Shown: positions 3,044-60,552 of the stretch, in pieces
Position numbering within the stretch: position 1 is the first letter of the stretch
Layout of the letters: the number at the start of each line of letters is the position of its first letter
Assembly (NCBI GenBank): GCA_946965045.2
Contig: OX337231.1
Location: 1,426,001-1,490,000 of the forward strand
Length of the DNA stretch: 64,000 bases
Origin: Epithemia pelagica
Lineage: Eukaryota; Protista; Bacillariophyta
Direction of reading: 5' to 3'
Program-made: the position numbers and the translations under genes
Notes under the pieces: generated by a model
Databases searched by the model: none
Seen by the model: the letters and a program-made list of their open reading frames with translations, nothing else
What the model was told of the DNA's origin: nothing

Positions 3044-4590
3044 ATGGCGGACAAGAATCAATCCCCAGCGCAGATTGGGTCCAAACGAAACATTGAGGGT
3101 CTTGCGGCTCCTTCTCCGCGGACATTTTCGTCTCGTGGACGTCGTTTTCTGGACGCAATCCTGGTGGAACCGCAGTCGTTAGCGGCGACGCATCCTGAGC
3201 TGTGCTTCCTATTCCGAAGGATTCCCCATCCGGCGATCGGGGACACCACGGTCGATATCATCATTCGCGAAGCGGATTGGAATTTTTGGAAGGCATGCAT
3301 TGCCGAGTTGGAGGATCCCGACCCCCAGAAAATACGCAAGCGCGTGGCGGTGATCGGGTCCCCGGGGGTCGGCAAGTCAACGACGGCTCTCTTTCTCATC
3401 CGACGCCTCTTGGAGATGACGAAAACTGTCGTTTATAGAATGAAAGGAACTGCCGGGAATTATGTCATATTCAACCCTCATAATGGTAGTAACTCGCCGG
3501 TGGTGACAGAGGTACCAGGAGCCACGCCCGAGACAGGGATTCCTCCTCTCAAGAACAGGGAGACGTACTTCATTATCGACCCTGGCGTCACAACAACAAA
3601 CTGCAACCCAGATCCAAATGTCAAGGCCAAAGTTCTGATCGTTGCGTCACCTGATGAGCGTCATTGGGGTGGGAACACATTCCCTAAAGACCAGCCAGGT
3701 TGGCCGGGAGGTTTGTACTGGTATTTTCCACCCTGGTCTCTGTAAGAGCTACAGTCAGCAGGAAGCCTACTGTTGCCCCCCATCGCATCTGATCAGATTC
3801 AGCACATGTTTTCTATTTTCGGAGGAATCCCTAGACAGGTTTTCAGGCCGGCATATTCCAAACAGAATAGCAAAGTACTTAAAACGAAGGTCGAAGCTCT
3901 GTCGGAGACGCACGCAAGAAACCTTGTCTCGGGCCGCTTCAACGTTCACGCAAATTTTGGAGCAGATCAAACGCACGGTGGCATAGCAATTTTCACACCG
4001 ACTGATGATTATGAAGATTTTGTTGTATCCCTCGCGTCGGTCTCTGTTGGAAATTGGGTACGATCGTACTTTTGGGGCGCTATCTGGGCCGACCTCGCCT
4101 TGTATCTGACTCCTACTGCTTGGCAATTGCTTGAAAGCTACTCAATGGAGGCCATGATGAGGACCAACCAATACACTGCACGCCATTGTGTGGGCAAATC
4201 AGACAAACTCTATGTGCAGACCTTTGCACTGGAGTTTGGAGGTTGTACTTCAAAATCATTTCAATATGAGTGTTCGCCAGCTGTGAAGGATGGCAGCGAC
4301 AATGTGCTATTTTTCTCCTCGAATCGACAGCATCGCTGTACGACATGATCTTCAAGAGAGATTCAACATTTTACGCCATCCAAGTGACAATTGGTCGAAA
4401 CCACGATGCCACGCAGGCACAAATTGAAGAGCTCGCACAACTACTGCAGATCGGACACGGTGGACGAGAGCTGAAACTCATTTATGCCGTGCACGAAGCC
4501 CTATTTGACGGGTTTGCGACTAATATAGTGCAGCCAAAGAGTCCACCTGGGGTATCAATCTATCATTTGTCTTTGCGCCAAAGTCTATAG
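3044..4590 (+). pseudogene. Crinkler/RHS-type P-loop NTPase plus PD-(D/E)XK-like nuclease pseudogene
   Basis: Walker A VIGSPGVGKST. Conserved PPWSL[E]EL is broken by an in-frame TAA at 3743-3745, and the reading continues in the same frame (FGGIPR). A 1-nt deletion near 4334 splits H[P]LYDMIFK…YAIQVTIGRNH. Confidence 0.75.
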
Positions 4591-4799
4591 TGCACTTTAA
4601 TAAGCTGTTGGTGAAGTTACTACAACACGCATCACCAGGATGGTGTCTGTCAAGTCGCTCGGAGCAATCATACCGGTACCAGTACACACCGACACCGACA
4701 ATATTCAACCATCCGTTGTGGACTGGTTGGGCTGTTTTCGTCGCATGGTCGGGATATTCCTACTAAGGTCTACGTAAGTGAACTTCTTTACATGGCTAA

Positions 4800-5215
4800 A
4801 TCCCGTTACTGATCGATCCGAGGTCGCCCGAGCCGCATTCCATCACGTGGATTACGGAGTTCAATGAAGCGTCCGTCGAACTCGCTTTCAACAATGTGGA
4901 GGAGGAAGGGACGAAGGCGCACCCCCACATTGTGTACGTCAACCAATCATGTCCGGAACGCACCGTAAAGTTTGACGTTCAGCTGGTCCACGACATGGAG
5001 CATCCTTGTGCTCCAATGCTGGTCATCACATTCGATTGAAGGTTCCCCCGATGGACATCAACAAGTATACGATGACCGTCCCCTCCCCGATTTCCTTCAT
5101 GGCCACGTCCTCCTTTTCCAGACTCCCTGGACCGACTACTGGAAGGCAGATACCGATCATTGCTGCAGCGGCAAAATCAAGGACCATTGTGTTGACGACA
5201 AGCAATCGCAAATTG
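4800..5215 (+). pseudogene. Two unidentified protein-like fragments at the start of the mosaic
   Basis: Stop-free protein-like stretches PLLIDPRSPEPHSITWITEFNEA…VKFDVQLVHDMEH (about 4800-5000) and VYDDRPLPDFLHGHVLLFQTPWTDYWKAD (about 5020-5215), with no start context. Confidence 0.3.
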
Positions 5216-5216
5216 A

Positions 5217-5798
5217 GACGGGACGCTGGCCAACCTCTTGACAATTATGAGCCGGCACGAGGAGTTGCCACTGATTGGTTACATTCCCATGGGTTCAGGT
5301 AATGGAGTAGGATCTGTAGTGGGATGTGGTCAGTTTTCTTTCTTTCGACCGACGGCGGCGACGCGAGAAACAGTTTCTCGATGTACTAGAGGCCTTGCAC
5401 GAAATTGGTCATGCAACGAAGATCTCGACGACATTGATGTTGTGGACCTGCCCATGATACAAGTGACGTTGACGGAAATGACTTATGGTACACCCATGAA
5501 TGAGCTGTGTTTCTTTGCCGGCGTGGGCTTTGACTCGATGATGTTGGACGATTTTCGCCAGATCAAGGCGTGGTCGCGCCGAACCGGGGTCTTGAAGAAT
5601 ATCTTGTCGTCCGTGGCGGGTTATTGCGTCGCTCTCGTAGTTCGGACCCTGCCCCAAGCTGTGTTATGTGGACAGCATCTTGTGAAAGTAAAGGTCACAT
5701 CGAATGATTCCGAGTGCGTTTGGATCGATCATCGACGAGGAGATGTTATGAGAAAGTGTGGCAGTGGTACCCTATTTGAGGGCGTTACCGGTATCCTG
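5217..5798 (+). pseudogene. Internal fragment of a diacylglycerol kinase (DAGK/YegS)-family gene
   Basis: Begins mid-motif at DGTL (from GGDGT), contains GYIPMGSGNG and FFAGVGFDS, and ends abruptly at FEGVTGIL. Both termini are missing. Confidence 0.75.
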
Positions 5799-5829
5799 GA
5801 GATCCAGTGCTCAGGTCCGAGACGTATCA

Positions 5830-5975
5830 TGAGTCTGGCCTGTGGACAGATCCAAAGGCGCATACAGCGAGGGTCCATCGTCCTTGACAAGAAGTGGTTC
5901 GTAGTAGGTCTTGCGCCAAAAATCCTTCTTGGCAGGAGGTACCACTACAAGTTTATTGTCATCAGCCACACGCCC
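5830..5975 (-). pseudogene. N-terminal fragment of a DUF1349 (Ree1/ConA-like) protein
   Basis: Minus-strand translation KLVVVPPAKKDFWRKTYYEPLLVKDDGPSLY matches the DFWxxTyY motif of DUF1349; truncated shortly afterwards. Confidence 0.55.
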
Positions 5976-6124
5976 AGCTCCATCGCATCCCTCCCGGCCA
6001 CTGCCGGTGTCCCTCCAGCCATCAGATCGACAGCACCAATTGAGGAAGCCGAGGTTTCCTTGAAAGCCAAGAAATTAAAGTCTTCTCGGAACCTTCACTC
6101 ATGGTATCGCGAACTGGGGTGAAA

Positions 6125-6234
6125 TACATCGCCGGATTTGTCTTCGGCCAGGGTGCGCGTTTTACTCACCGCCAGCACGGCGATACGCACCGGCACAAAG
6201 TCGCGGGTTTCGTCTATGGCTCATTTCGTCTCCT
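6125..6234 (-). pseudogene. moaB: Bacterial moaB (Moco biosynthesis protein B) 5' fragment with Shine-Dalgarno site
   Basis: AGGAG at 6234-6230, 5-nt spacer, ATG at 6224, a frameshift, then IDETRDFVPVRIAVLAVSKTRTLAEDKSGD, which resembles the alphaproteobacterial MoaB N-terminus. Hand-counted GC is about 61% over 6121-6300. Confidence 0.75.
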
Positions 6235-6303
6235 GCAGTGCGGCCCTTCTTGGAGGCGGCACGAGTTGAGCGTCTCGCCCGAGACTGGGTGCGGCATTGA
6301 CAA

Positions 6304-6487
6304 TCTGGAAATAATCAAGCGGGTGGAAGACTTGAAAATGAGTGCAACTACGATTTTCCTCCAAGATGAAGAGAAAAGACCCATCGCTCGATCTGTTCTT
6401 CGAGAGATGCCCAACGGACACATCCGAGTTGAGGCAACCTTTGGGCTACCCAATTTTGGTAAAGAAAGTGACTCAGACCAACATTGA
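6304..6487 (+). pseudogene. Orphan 3' end of an unidentified gene
   Basis: LEIIKRVEDLKMSATTIFLQDEEKRPIARSVLREMPNGHIRVEATFGLP…stop, followed by AT-rich UTR-like DNA; no native 5' part. Confidence 0.35.
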
Positions 6488-6699
6488 CAAGAACGAGGAT
6501 TGAAAAGTATACATACGGATCCACTAAGTAATATTTAACGTTATGCTATGGTTAGGCATGAAAGTTCGAAGATAAACGGGTATCCTCGACAGAAGCGAAG
6601 ATACTATGTAATATTCTTGGCGGCAAAAGTGCTCTCCATGTGAACACTTTGTCGCGAAGAGGGATCATCACACTCCAGCAGGAGAGATCAAAAAGCAGG

Positions 6700-7797
6700 T
6701 CAATCATCGGCAACATCTAGTTCATCAGCTTGGTCATTTTCTTTCTTGTCCTTTTTCCATAGTTCAATTATGTCGCCATCCTTCATACCCAGTGCCAAAG
6801 GAGTATCTTCAGGAGAAATCACTTTACCATGAAACCTCATGCCTATGGAAGAAGATGGAATTTCGATTTGTGCGGCTGCACCTGCTAGGAGGGGCTTGAT
6901 TTTCTTGGCCTTCGCGAACAAGAAGACGTACTCTGTAGCAGATCCAGCCAAAATGGCTTTGATGGTTATTTTTTTAGGCGGTGTTCCCGGTTCTTCTTCT
7001 TGTTTCGCATTTTCAGGCGTAGTTCCACGTGTCTCTTCTGGTGTAACAGGGACCTCTTCTGTTTGGGAGTTTTGTTGCGGCGTAGCGGGTGCTTCTGTTT
7101 TGGGTTGACAACGAGCTTGAGTCGGCGAGATATGATTTAACCAGAGATCCTCGTCATACGCTTCTCCAAACTTTTCCTTTAATGCCGTTCGGGTGGCGTC
7201 ATCTCTCTGCTTTTGCTTGTTTTCATCTGCGTACAGCTCTAATTCTCGAGATCGACCGATGAAATGACCACAGAGAAAAAGGCAATCGTGAATATAATTT
7301 GTAGTGTCCAGAATGTGTTCTTGCCACATGCGGTCCACATCCACACTGCACGGATAAAATTTCTCTGTGATATCGCAATCATCATCCAAGTTCTCGGAAA
7401 CTTTGTCTTCTACAAGAGACAAGTACTGTCTGTATCCACTCAAAACACGTCTTGCGTAGGCCTCATTCCACTTGTATTTCTTCATACAGCTCATGACAAG
7501 TGGTGTGGCTCCTTGTCCTTTTCCATTCTTCAAGCAGCTGAAAAAACTGAGATCCACCATCCACCAAAAATCTCGAATCAGATACGGAGTGGTACGATGA
7601 GGCAATGAAATGTGTACACGATCGTCAGACCCGAGTTGATGATCTGCTGTTGTCGAAGAAAAGGGGTCCACCTGGATGATTGATCCCTCACTAGCATCTC
7701 CATTTGGGGTTCCAATCCGACGCCTTTTGTTCGAGTCCACCGAAACCACCGCTGCCTCGGGCTGCGGCTGGTCGTGAGAGATATCTCCCAATGACAT
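6700..7797 (-). CDS. GRDP-like (DUF1399-like) domain protein with C-terminal SUMO-like (Rad60-SLD) domain
   Basis: W…A…Y..YL.L…P..VD.MW.EH…T.NY..DC motif. The C-terminus MRFHGKVISPEDTPLALGMKDGDIIE is SUMO/ubiquitin-like. First ATG is at 7797. Confidence 0.7.
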   Translation of the reverse strand: MSLGDISHDQPQPEAAVVSVDSNKRRRIGTPNGDASEGSIIQVDPFSSTTADHQLGSDDRVHISLPHRTTPYLIRDFWWMVDLSFFSCLKNGKGQGATPLVMSCMKKYKWNEAYARRVLSGYRQYLSLVEDKVSENLDDDCDITEKFYPCSVDVDRMWQEHILDTTNYIHDCLFLCGHFIGRSRELELYADENKQKQRDDATRTALKEKFGEAYDEDLWLNHISPTQARCQPKTEAPATPQQNSQTEEVPVTPEETRGTTPENAKQEEEPGTPPKKITIKAILAGSATEYVFLFAKAKKIKPLLAGAAAQIEIPSSSIGMRFHGKVISPEDTPLALGMKDGDIIELWKKDKKENDQADELDVADD

Positions 7798-8303
7798 TTT
7801 GGTTGCTCCAACGTCCAATCTATGAGTTCCGAAAGCTCTTCCTGTACCCGTTTGTTCTCAAGGAGAATGCCGCTTTGTTGACAATGGAGGATGTCACTTG
7901 AATGAGCTGTCTGTGCAAACAGTGCGAACAGGATTTCAGATTTTTCCGCGTTGGGCGATCCAGGGAATCCAGAGTCGGCGATATGCTCCTAAGCGGTGAC
8001 GTCAAAAATAAATAGTAAAATCTTTCGGCAAGTTTTCATTCAAAAATGGGTATGGGACGCTCAGAGTGAATTGTAGTCCCCAAGCCCAAAGAGCCCATTT
8101 CGGCTCCAGCTCCAACTCCATCCCAGGGAGTGTCGCTGTTCCCAGTTCAGATCCCGGTGCAATACCATATCGCAGTCATATTGTCTATGCGCGGACAGAC
8201 GGCCGCACATAGATTATGTCACGACATGAATCTCCCACCATCGCCGCACAACCGCACACACGTCTGTATTGTGGTCGCAGTACAACTTTATTGGCGGGTC
8301 AAA

Positions 8304-9605
8304 ATGATGACAGTGCCCAAGATGAATCGGCTTCACCGCTTGTCCTTGCTATGCGCGGCAGTGATGCTTGTCGTCGTTGCAACCATGGTAGAGCCAATCC
8401 GTGCACAAGAGGAGGGGTCATCGATTCCTCCTCAAACTGGGGATAATACTGTAAAGTCGGAAGCCCCACCTGGCACTGCAAGCGACGACCAACAAGAAGA
8501 AACACCCCAAAGACCAAAGGAAGTGATTGAAGATAACTTTGATGCAAGCAATCGAAACTGGGGTTCCTATTACGACCCTAAAAATATTTTTTGTGGCGAG
8601 TATGACTGCTACAAGATTTTGGGATTCGACTATGATTCATTTGGCAAAAGCCCTCCCGACACCAAACTAATCACCAAACGCTACCGAAAGCTGTCGCGTG
8701 AATGGCATCCTGATAAATCCAAGCACAAAGATGCTAAGGAGCGATTTGTCAAGATTGCCCGTGCCTATGAAGTCCTGACAGATGTTGAAGTAAGGAAAGA
8801 GTATGACTCGATGAGGTTTAATCAAGAAGCCTACTTTGCCAAGTATGGAACATCCGTCTTGTGGTCCTACGCCCCTAAATCAGATCTTACCATGGTGGTC
8901 TTATTGATCTTCACGATAGCCAATATCGTTTCATGGTTTTCACAACAACATCGGTGGCAGATGGTGGCCAATCGTCTCATCAAGGCAGCTGTGGAGGACT
9001 GGACTACGGCACAAGGAGGAAGTCCCGAAAGTAAAGATTTAAGAGAGCGCGCTCTTTCTATCCTCTATGAGAAAAATGAGAAGAACGGAGATTCCAGCAA
9101 CGTCAACAACACGTCAACCGAATCGAACGCCAATAGCAAGAAATCGAAAAAGGAAAAGCAGAAAGGCTCCAAGAAAGTGTCTGGAAGGGAGAAAAAGAAA
9201 ATGGAAGAAGAAGCATTGTTCCCTGTAGTAAAAGCGTTGGTGAATGAAATGCATGACTTTGGGGGTGGTTTCCACAAGCCAACATGGCGTGATTTGCTGA
9301 TTGTAACCCTTGCGAAAGCTCCCTTTGGAATAACTGCTGCCGTTTTCTGGAACATGAAGTACTATATTCGACGACTCCAGAAACTGGAGCTTAATAAAGA
9401 AGAACGGCAGGTTTTGACGAAACGTGCAGTGGGTCCTGTGATTTGGGATACCAAGTCAGATGAGGAACGAGAGGAAATGATGAAACGAGACCTTTGGGTC
9501 CTCTCAAACTTGGCTGAATGGGAAGAAGAGCAAGAAGTCAAGAACCTGAGCTCTGCTGAACAAAAGCAGTACGCAAAACTGAAGAAGAAAGGTAAACTGG
9601 AGTAG
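8304..9605 (+). CDS. DNAJC25: ER-type J-domain co-chaperone, DNAJC25-like
   Basis: Signal peptide from ATG 8304; FCGEYDCYKILG…WHPDK J-domain followed by a transmembrane segment. Confidence 0.8.
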   Translation: MMTVPKMNRLHRLSLLCAAVMLVVVATMVEPIRAQEEGSSIPPQTGDNTVKSEAPPGTASDDQQEETPQRPKEVIEDNFDASNRNWGSYYDPKNIFCGEYDCYKILGFDYDSFGKSPPDTKLITKRYRKLSREWHPDKSKHKDAKERFVKIARAYEVLTDVEVRKEYDSMRFNQEAYFAKYGTSVLWSYAPKSDLTMVVLLIFTIANIVSWFSQQHRWQMVANRLIKAAVEDWTTAQGGSPESKDLRERALSILYEKNEKNGDSSNVNNTSTESNANSKKSKKEKQKGSKKVSGREKKKMEEEALFPVVKALVNEMHDFGGGFHKPTWRDLLIVTLAKAPFGITAAVFWNMKYYIRRLQKLELNKEERQVLTKRAVGPVIWDTKSDEEREEMMKRDLWVLSNLAEWEEEQEVKNLSSAEQKQYAKLKKKGKLE

Positions 9606-18768: not shown

Positions 18769-19801
18769 TCAAGGGTCTTCAAACCGCTCAACGGATTCAA
18801 GCTGCACTTCCTCTGATTCCATCATCTCGAGTCCCAGCGCTCCTTCAGATATCATGTTGACACCAATATCCGCAGCAGCTCCTGCAGGGAGTTCTTCGTC
18901 AATATCCTGTTCCCATTCTTCTTCCTCTTCTTCGTCCCATTCTTCTTCTTCCTCTTCATCCTCCGATTCTTCCTCATTGTCTTCCCACTCGTCCTCGTCC
19001 CATTCTTCTTCCTCTTCATCCCAATCTTCGTCCCATGCAACCATATCCTCGATCAATGGTTCGGGGTGGGGACCTTCGGGTGGAGGGGGTGGAGGAGGAA
19101 ACTTGCCAGGATGGGGGAAGGGTGGCTCTTCTTCCTGTAGAATCCCTGGAGGAGGTGGAGGGGGAGGAGGACCCTCACCCACGGGAGGTTCAGGGCGAGG
19201 GGGAGGAGGAGGAGGCGGGAAAGGTCCCCCATCTTCAGGTGGGACGCCTGGGGGTGGAGGGGGAGGAGGAGGTCCTTCATGCCACTCATCGTGATGATGA
19301 GGTCCATGATGATGGTCTCCTTTGTGGGACTGGTAAGACAATAACATGAGGTTAGTGGACTAGAAATTGAAAAAAAAAAGTTTTTTAAGCCATCGCTGTT
19401 CAATCTCATCATGAAACACTTACATGATCGCCATGGTGGTGGTGCCAGTCTCCGTCATGATGACTGTCGTGATCATGATGGTGATGCCCATCGTGGCTGT
19501 CGTGGTGATGCCCCTTGTGACTGTTGTGATCATGATGGTGATGCTCATCATGGTCGCCATGATGATGGTGGCAAGGCTTCTTGTCATGGCTTGATCGAAG
19601 GAAAAGCGAGTTTCCAGAATGCCCTTGGAAGTTTTCCGTCATGAGCAAAATCAACAAAAATACAATCGTAGTTACCCCGACAACGGCCGGCAAAGCGCAC
19701 CATCGGCTCCTGCGACGATCGGACTCCACCGTCACTGCCTCCGCCAACACTGGAGACTTCCCAGTGTCCTTGGTCGGGACAGCTTCATACTGTTTCGTCA
19801 T
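18769..19801 (-). CDS. Type II membrane protein with His-rich, Pro-rich and Asp/Glu-Trp-rich extracytosolic blocks (312 aa, 1 intron)
   Basis: Exons 19801-19424 and 19329-18769 (94-nt GTAAGT…CAG intron, phase 0). One TM helix, about 36 His in about 73 residues, poly-Pro runs, then WDEDWDEEEEEW. Confidence 0.8.
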
Positions 19802-59310: not shown

Positions 59311-60552
59311 ATGACCTTTGTTCCCTACAAAGTCGATCATCAAGTGCAAAACGCGGCCAAAACACTTGGATTTTCGAAAAAGAAGGTGAATTTCAAGTTT
59401 GGGTTTGCCAGTCTCCCAGCCATTGAAGAAGGCAAGGCCGGTGCGGGTTGTCGAGGAAGTGAACATGAAGTGGTCTTTATTTGGAGTTTGAAATCGGGCA
59501 AACGACAATTGATGGTGGACGGCAAAGACGTCCATTTTTCGGAGTCGGGCCAAAATGGCTGGATGAATGATCGATCGTGGCAACATTCCTTTGTCCTCAA
59601 CGACAATGCCACTGGAGAACGGTACAATATTCATTTCATTTCCCAACCTCCCCGACCCGAAATTCATGATGCGCACCCGTTTGATTTGCGTGTCAATGGA
59701 GTCAGTTATTTCAAATTCAATGAAATTTGGAAGTTGGGTTCCGCGCAAATGATGGTGCGAGGCGGCGAACGGAGTGCGGGCAGTTCAGGTCGTCGATACC
59801 GTCAGGCACCACCACCCGATCAAGGTTTGTCGGCCGAAGAAGAACGCCAAATTGCCCATGCCAAATTGGAATCTCTCCGCGATTTGGCCAAACATCAAGA
59901 TCAGCCTCCGGCACCACCAACGAATGGAGGAGATGCCTCTCTCATTTCCTTTGATGCTCCACCTCCCAGCCAAGTTGTGGTACCCTCCTCGATGCCACCC
60001 CAGCAGCAGCAGCCGTCCCTCAATGCCTTTGCAGCTCCGGCTCCCAGTCCCTATGCCGGGGCTGCTACTACGGTTGCCTATGGAGCACCCCCGCCACCCG
60101 CCGCCGCATATGGTGGACAACCCGCTTACAATGCCTTTGCCCCTGCGCCTGTGGCAGCCACGGCAACAACAACAACGACGCAATTGACTTCGTACACAGG
60201 ACCGCCAGCGCCCTATGGAGGAGGTGTCGCAGCTCCGGCACCCATGCCGTCGTATACGGTTCCACCTCCCGTGGCAGCAGCACCCTACGGGGCCCCCCAG
60301 CAGCAACAGCCCTATGCGGCCCAAACTCCCACCTATGCTGGGAGTGGTGGTGGTATGGCGGACAATCCGTTTGCGTCCCCCGGTGGACAAACGGAATACA
60401 GTTATGGTTCGGCACCCTCCTTTGCTCGTCCTCCGCCCGCTGCGGCGGCGGCTCCTGCACCTGGCTATCCTCCGCAACCCTCATATGGCATGCCACCTCA
60501 ACAGCAACAATCACCACCTCCCTATGGTACTCCCTATGCGCAACAACAATAG
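59311..60552 (+). CDS. FAIM-like beta-sandwich protein with UIM-like helix and Pro/Gln/Tyr-rich tail (413 aa)
   Basis: HEVVFIWSLKSGKRQLMVDGKDVH resembles the FAIM HxIxFxHxxxSGKRxxxVDG motif; EEERQIAHAKLESL; LISFD; DNPF. Confidence 0.6.
   Translation: MTFVPYKVDHQVQNAAKTLGFSKKKVNFKFGFASLPAIEEGKAGAGCRGSEHEVVFIWSLKSGKRQLMVDGKDVHFSESGQNGWMNDRSWQHSFVLNDNATGERYNIHFISQPPRPEIHDAHPFDLRVNGVSYFKFNEIWKLGSAQMMVRGGERSAGSSGRRYRQAPPPDQGLSAEEERQIAHAKLESLRDLAKHQDQPPAPPTNGGDASLISFDAPPPSQVVVPSSMPPQQQQPSLNAFAAPAPSPYAGAATTVAYGAPPPPAAAYGGQPAYNAFAPAPVAATATTTTTQLTSYTGPPAPYGGGVAAPAPMPSYTVPPPVAAAPYGAPQQQQPYAAQTPTYAGSGGGMADNPFASPGGQTEYSYGSAPSFARPPPAAAAAPAPGYPPQPSYGMPPQQQQSPPPYGTPYAQQQ

Follow-up and report, generated by a model that had tools for sequence, protein, structure and literature searches.

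On its minus strand, around position 6200, the 64-kb window (the whole stretch of Epithemia pelagica DNA that was analyzed) carries the beginning of a moaB gene together with a Shine-Dalgarno-like site. Read in this direction, an AGGAG motif (6234-6230) is followed by a spacer of 5 nt (ACGAA), an ATG codon (6224-6222), an AGC codon (6221-6219) and an extra C (6218), which is exactly the arrangement that had been written down in the initial annotation. The moaB-like frame at 6217-6128 encodes precisely the 30 residues quoted there. In total the frame comprises 30-31 codons (6217-6125), and after 6128 the minus-strand frame continues through 10 unrelated codons before a stop is reached. The segment is conspicuous by its base composition. 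GC content is 59.8% in the coding part (6128-6224), 65% in the 66 nt upstream of it (6225-6290) and 62% for 6128-6290 as a whole, as compared to 47.8% for the entire window, in which just 0.8% of segments of 163 nt reach so high a value. These values are in line with the local GC content of about 61%, above the flanks, that had been noted earlier. The features of the locus are compiled in Table 1.

Table 1. Features identified at the moaB locus and in its surroundings (positions refer to the window).
Feature	Position	Strand	Basis
DAG/lipid-kinase internal fragment, diatom-type, from 'DGT' motif to 'GVTGIL'	5217..5798	+	relatives including Mayamaea, Seminavis and Cylindrotheca
DUF1349-family fragment	5850..5960	-	Pfam PF07081, E 1.8e-5, profile positions 13-47 of 179
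Spacer between the moaB and DUF1349 fragments	5970..6124	.	no Pfam/tblastn match; 70% GC patch at ~5960-6020
moaB 5' end: start codon and first ~34 codons	6125..6224	-	tblastn, NCBIfam, pattern relatives; Rhodobacteraceae-like
GC-rich stretch directly upstream of the ATG, putative donor upstream DNA	6225..6295	-	composition and layout
Open frame on the far side of the moaB fragment, stop at 6485-6487	6296..6487	+	no significant match

Several searches converge on the identity of the coding part. Comparison of the 30 residues with plasmids and chromids (tblastn, 7.3 Gb) returned 41 records, and moaB is annotated beneath the best matches, which are the moaB N-termini of Sphingomonas (76.7%, E 7e-7), Azospirillum, Sinorhizobium and Ruegeria. 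In NCBIfam, the peptide aligns with model positions 1-25 of TIGR02667 (moaB_proteo; E 9e-6), the equivalog for proteobacterial MoaB. When the full-length MoaB of the closest relative, the Rhodobacteraceae MAG L027, was compared with the 64-kb window by tblastn, a single match was obtained, placing residues 4-35 on 6217-6122 (87.5% over 32 residues, E 7e-13), while the other 145 residues of this protein matched nowhere in the window. The sole matches of the peptide in the PDB were to E. coli MoaB and were weak (E 0.16-0.18); gephyrin or Cnx1 chains were not among them.

The relatives were further delimited by a codon-degenerate DNA pattern covering the variable lead-in I-D-E-T-R-x-F-V-P-V-R-I-A-V, which was run on 185,579 reference species. 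It was present in 37 genomes, all 37 of them Alphaproteobacteria (Rhodobacterales, Sphingomonadales, Hyphomicrobium, Rhizomicrobium and Caulobacterales); as the reference collection consists of prokaryotes only, this uniform result shows affinity and leaves room for a eukaryotic intermediate. L027 shares 28 of the 30 residues with the fragment, with a DNA identity of only 76%, and both have Ala16, which is rare (2 of the 37 relatives). The metagenome contig L041 is as close to the fragment as L027. The start codon of the fragment is at the same place as the starts of the bacterial genes, and the conserved motifs R-I-A-V-L-x-V-S-x-T-R and S-G-D are kept. A near-identical donor was not detected in the ~185k reference genomes, in the collection of metagenomes or in the runs of the organism itself, the best DNA identity being 76-80%, and at the DNA level 6100-6320 had no match in plasmids and E. 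coli genomes. Thus, 6125-6224 is the 5' end of an alphaproteobacterial moaB gene, and to judge from sequence similarity the donor would belong to the class Alphaproteobacteria and probably to the family Rhodobacteraceae. The initial annotation had proposed a bacterial moaB start of alphaproteobacterial type, and tblastn, NCBIfam and the 37 of 37 alphaproteobacterial pattern relatives agree with this proposal. It had also expected best hits in Alphaproteobacteria, as found here, and had named eukaryotic Cnx1/gephyrin G-domains as the competing outcome; instead, the PDB search led to E. coli MoaB and the NCBIfam search to the proteobacterial equivalog.

What is present amounts to ~19% of the gene (34 of ~180 codons); the remaining ~81% are absent and similarity to MoaB stops abruptly at ~6125. 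With 25.4 bits the peptide fell short of the full-length cut-off of TIGR02667 (222.4), and a Pfam match (PF00994, MoCF_biosynth) was not obtained for the fragment. The closest relatives begin with M-S-R-I-D-E (ATGAGCCGG ATC GAC), where the window has ATGAGCC ATA GAC. Measured against them, the frame is broken in codon 3, where 2 nt are deleted (at 6218); if the donor gene had an M-x-I-D-E start, as in Sphingomonas, the frameshift would instead correspond to a 1-nt insertion. In addition, the Asp residue of the S-D-T-R motif (Asp19), a position that the search pattern left unconstrained and that is Asp in 37 of 37 relatives, reads Lys (AAA) in the fragment. Both lesions that had been reported, the frameshift after codon 2 and the exchange of the conserved Asp for Lys, are therefore real.

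Of the 24 nucleotide differences between the fragment and L027, 17 fall in synonymous codons, indicating that the 24% divergence in DNA accumulated mostly while the gene was under purifying selection in bacteria; only a few changes may date from after the transfer. With four fifths of the gene missing, the frame broken in codon 3, the Asp lost and prokaryotic signals in place, the fragment is predicted to have no function. As it never comprised more than ~19% of the gene, it was dead on arrival. The earlier assignment as non-functional is well founded on the stub, the broken frame and the replaced invariant Asp. The earlier description as 'decaying' is right in that the lesions exist, but it adds little, since a stub of ~100 nt could never have worked.

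The stretch preceding the ATG was considered separately. AGGAG lies 5 nt before the ATG, the right distance for a Shine-Dalgarno-like site, and an upstream open frame ends in a TGA (6223-6221) that overlaps the start codon as ATGA. The same ATGA overlap joins a family-4 uracil-DNA glycosylase (UDG) gene to moaB in L027, L007 and L041. Assignment of 6225-6295 to the tail of such a UDG gene was considered, one frame reading L-S-M-P-H-P-V-S where the bacteria have L-P-M-T-H-P-A-Y, but is unsupported: an nhmmer profile built from eight bacterial UDG tails misses the stretch, UDG protein gave no match to it by tblastn, and when it was aligned locally with 38 upstream regions of bacteria, the scores did not rise above shuffles after multiple testing. 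The 65% GC, the Shine-Dalgarno-like site and the ATGA overlap nevertheless make a bacterial origin of 6225-6295 likely. For the embedded ribosome-binding site that had been claimed, this means that motif, spacing and composition fit, but that with three negative homology tests of the upstream stretch it has to be regarded as a putative element.

Evidence for integration came from Logan contigs, i.e. independent k-mer assemblies, of four runs representing three samples, which were aligned to 4300-7300; all four runs are from one study and some of them are probably the data behind the assembly. Two contigs each extend without interruption over all 3 kb, and in two further runs the moaB fragment and both junctions are contained within single contigs. 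Neither joints nor loose ends occur at the fragment in the contigs of the four runs, and contig depth over the fragment equals the depth of the flanks. In these contigs the fragment is flanked on both sides by host DNA, and the diatom-type kinase fragment is part of the flank. Single-nucleotide polymorphisms within the fragment, relative to the window and between contigs, are located at 6137 (Lys27/Asn), 6200 (Asp6/Glu) and 6276. Since these differ between haplotype contigs, the insertion is present on more than one haplotype and is older than the divergence of the haplotypes. Other contigs of the four runs matching the fragment at ≥90% were not found, which speaks against the culture containing a donor bacterium and the genome a second, near-identical copy. 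Hence, the moaB fragment is truly integrated in the nuclear DNA of the diatom, on more than one haplotype.

Genuine integration rather than contamination had been postulated on the basis of the lesions, and equal read depth over fragment and flanks had been suggested as a check; contigs of four runs that span both junctions, with polymorphisms inside the fragment and equal depths, now bear this out. The further idea of a transfer caught at an early stage is correct insofar as the DNA is raw and unused, whereas 'early' applies only in a relative sense, as the event predates the divergence of the haplotypes and the best DNA identity to a donor is 76-80%.

At positions 5992 and 6200, all four public runs differ from the base in the window, which therefore represents, at these positions, a haplotype or consensus absent from those contigs. 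The contigs of short-read run X1 break at 5124-5222 and at 6638-6667, with a loose end of 24 nt at 6667, suggesting a heterozygous structure or the edge of a repeat on either side of the patchwork described below.

The moaB fragment lies outside any working gene and forms part of a patchwork (4630-6490), three tiles of which were recognized as pieces of genes unrelated to one another. One recognizable neighbor is the internal part of a lipid kinase, whose relatives with organism names include diatoms (Table 1). When five full-length relatives of the kinase were used as tblastn queries, the N-terminal ~110-150 and the C-terminal ~120 residues were found nowhere in the window. That the moaB fragment might be intronic within an intact lipid-kinase gene was considered and rejected, because only the internal part of the kinase is present and 6296-6487 does not encode its C-terminus. 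The 194 codons of the kinase fragment are unbroken and the frame remains open to 6122, accounting for a gene call (5247-6122) with a 291-aa protein product, P0001. As the frame is intact even though both ends of the enzyme are missing, fragmentation of the kinase is probably recent, or else the frame was kept by chance.

Between kinase and moaB fragments lies a piece of a DUF1349 gene, which by tblastn matches DUF1349 genes only, at ≤47% identity. The best of these are bacterial, and by sequence a host as well as a foreign source may be considered for this piece. For 5970-6124 and 6296-6487, neither Pfam nor tblastn nor atlas searches gave a match. Terminal inverted or long direct repeats are absent around the block 4630-6490, and further pieces from the neighborhood of moaB were not detected when 4300-6800 was compared with all 41 bacterial loci by tblastx. 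Of the horizontal-transfer event that had been inferred at the outset, the integrated alphaproteobacterial piece is confirmed, but it is not a lone insertion, being one tile of a patchwork of fragments.

We consider it likely that a short piece of an alphaproteobacterial chromosome became fixed in the diatom nucleus, probably as filler in break repair by end joining, and that it is non-functional there. According to this model, the donor piece would have spanned the boundary of moaB with an upstream gene, would have included the first ~34 moaB codons and would have come from a Rhodobacteraceae-like alphaproteobacterium. Loose fragments, including one or more from bacteria and one or more of diatom type, would then have been ligated by end joining as filler at a chromosome break. 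[quoted passage not shown] Direct transfer from the bacterium would be the route in this model; searches yielded no donor with more than 80% DNA identity by which it, or its date, could be demonstrated. Rhodobacteraceae are well-known and common associates of diatoms, and diatom cultures are often xenic. A donor from this family is therefore plausible.

Alternatively, the fragment could be a secondary copy of sequence at another site of this nuclear genome, either a larger raw bacterial insert or a moaB gene of bacterial type that had become domesticated. At least one neighboring fragment is of diatom type, so the patchwork did draw on nuclear or eukaryotic DNA. We nonetheless regard a secondary copy as unlikely, given that the contigs of the four runs provide no other match at ≥90% and that the bacterial gene-junction layout and a GC content of 62-65% are kept, also upstream of the ATG, unlike in a domesticated gene. 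Less probable still is a capture of the moaB piece by a Pack-MULE- or Helitron-like element spanning 4630-6490. Such elements typically hold several unrelated gene fragments in mixed orientation, as seen here, but the block has neither the terminal inverted or long direct repeats nor a transposase or helicase domain, and it represents a single locus in the four runs, with nothing that would fit two places.

A bacterial read or contaminant mis-joined into the assembly would be conceivable in view of the often xenic cultures with Rhodobacteraceae and the common study behind the runs, but is very improbable: in the k-mer assemblies of the four runs, contigs read through both junctions at identical positions, polymorphisms lie inside the fragment and depth equals that of the flanks, and a bacterial piece of 100-170 nt with a broken frame does not resemble contamination. 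Finally, the G-domains of Cnx1 and gephyrin have a similar beta-strand and an 'LAED.SG'-like motif and the piece is only 30 residues long, but chance similarity or a fragment of the diatom's own G-domain can practically be dismissed in the face of the E-value of the L027 match within the window, the NCBIfam match to the first 25 positions of a proteobacterial equivalog, a PDB result confined to E. coli MoaB, and a match that begins with the start codon of the bacterial genes and extends over the lineage-specific I-D-E-T-R lead-in.

Putative filler DNA of bacterial origin invites comparison with the NUDTs of E. clementina, which consist of 8-42 rearranged fragments and are decaying and unexpressed (PMC12377750). 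The moaB fragment resembles these integrations and NUMT/NUPT mosaics in being non-functional, truncated prokaryote-type DNA in a nucleus that has kept the base composition of the donor and bears lesions, and further in its junction-spanning read support and its arrangement in multiple fragments of mixed orientation. It differs from NUDTs in the donor, which is a high-GC alphaproteobacterium here and a low-GC cyanobacterial endosymbiont there, in its size (~0.1-0.17 kb versus a minimum of 500 bp), in its identity of 76-80% to the nearest relatives as compared to 98.4% to the source, and in the eukaryotic gene fragments among its neighboring tiles. No diazoplast transfers were found in E. pelagica, a marine species with a 60-Mb genome of 48.19% GC (E. 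clementina: 44.3% GC), in the same study, which queried cyanobacterial genomes only and dropped matches below 500 bp (PMC12377750). With these queries and this minimum length, the moaB fragment could not have been seen there. In base composition the window (47.8% GC) is closer to E. pelagica than to E. clementina.

With proteobacterial MoaB proteins (TIGR02667; E. coli 1mkz/1r2k) the fragment has the first ~34 codons, the position of the start and the conserved motifs in common, whereas it differs from them in representing 19% of the gene, in the frameshift and in the replacement of the invariant Asp. It shares bacterial ancestry of a nuclear sequence with the functional bacterium-to-diatom transfers of Vancaester et al. 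2020, as these are cited in PMC12377750. Those transfers are described there as intact, expressed and host-adapted genes, in contrast to the unadapted stub with prokaryotic signals found here. Our survey of the literature, which was of incomplete coverage, retrieved no papers on bacterial scraps of non-endosymbiont origin in diatom nuclei.

In kind, the moaB fragment is an ordinary object, i.e. a non-functional scrap of lateral DNA of a known class and not a gene in the making. Taken alone it does not matter to the cell; it is valuable as evidence, and the interest lies in the aggregate phenomenon. It indicates that very short DNA from free-living or associated bacteria, beyond endosymbionts, reaches the diatom nucleus and persists there, and that such pieces land in composite patchworks, where they are missed by screens that require intact genes or homology of ≥500 bp. 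Tentatively, one may go further and imagine that uptake of loose DNA from bacteria around the diatom, possibly also from other eukaryotes, is routine and that the scraps are stitched in at chromosome breaks. If this were true, the genome would be peppered with foreign tiles of less than 500 bp that standard screens for horizontal gene transfer and NUDTs miss by design, and the moaB stub would mark a general and ongoing route of DNA uptake and not a one-off. Genome-wide counts of such tiles would directly estimate the input rate of raw foreign DNA behind the rare functional transfers.

Elsewhere in the window, the GC-rich islands at 18769-19347 (minus strand) and 59311-60552 (plus strand) were considered as bacterial and rejected, as they represent Pro/Ala/Glu-rich low-complexity eukaryotic coding sequence. 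Closer to the patchwork, three consecutive ORFs in different frames occupy 3044-4590 on the plus strand, with a P-loop NTPase at the start (weak DUF87/RHSP/nSTAND matches); possibly, they belong to a single gene, either broken or with introns, that immediately precedes the patchwork. From the other side, an ORF of 372 aa (6700-7818, minus strand) converges on the patchwork and has a C-terminal SUMO-like (Rad60-SLD/ubiquitin) domain that scores just under the Pfam cut-offs. It is followed by a long ORF on the plus strand (8130-9605), in which a J-domain-like motif (…REWHPDK…) was recognized by eye only.
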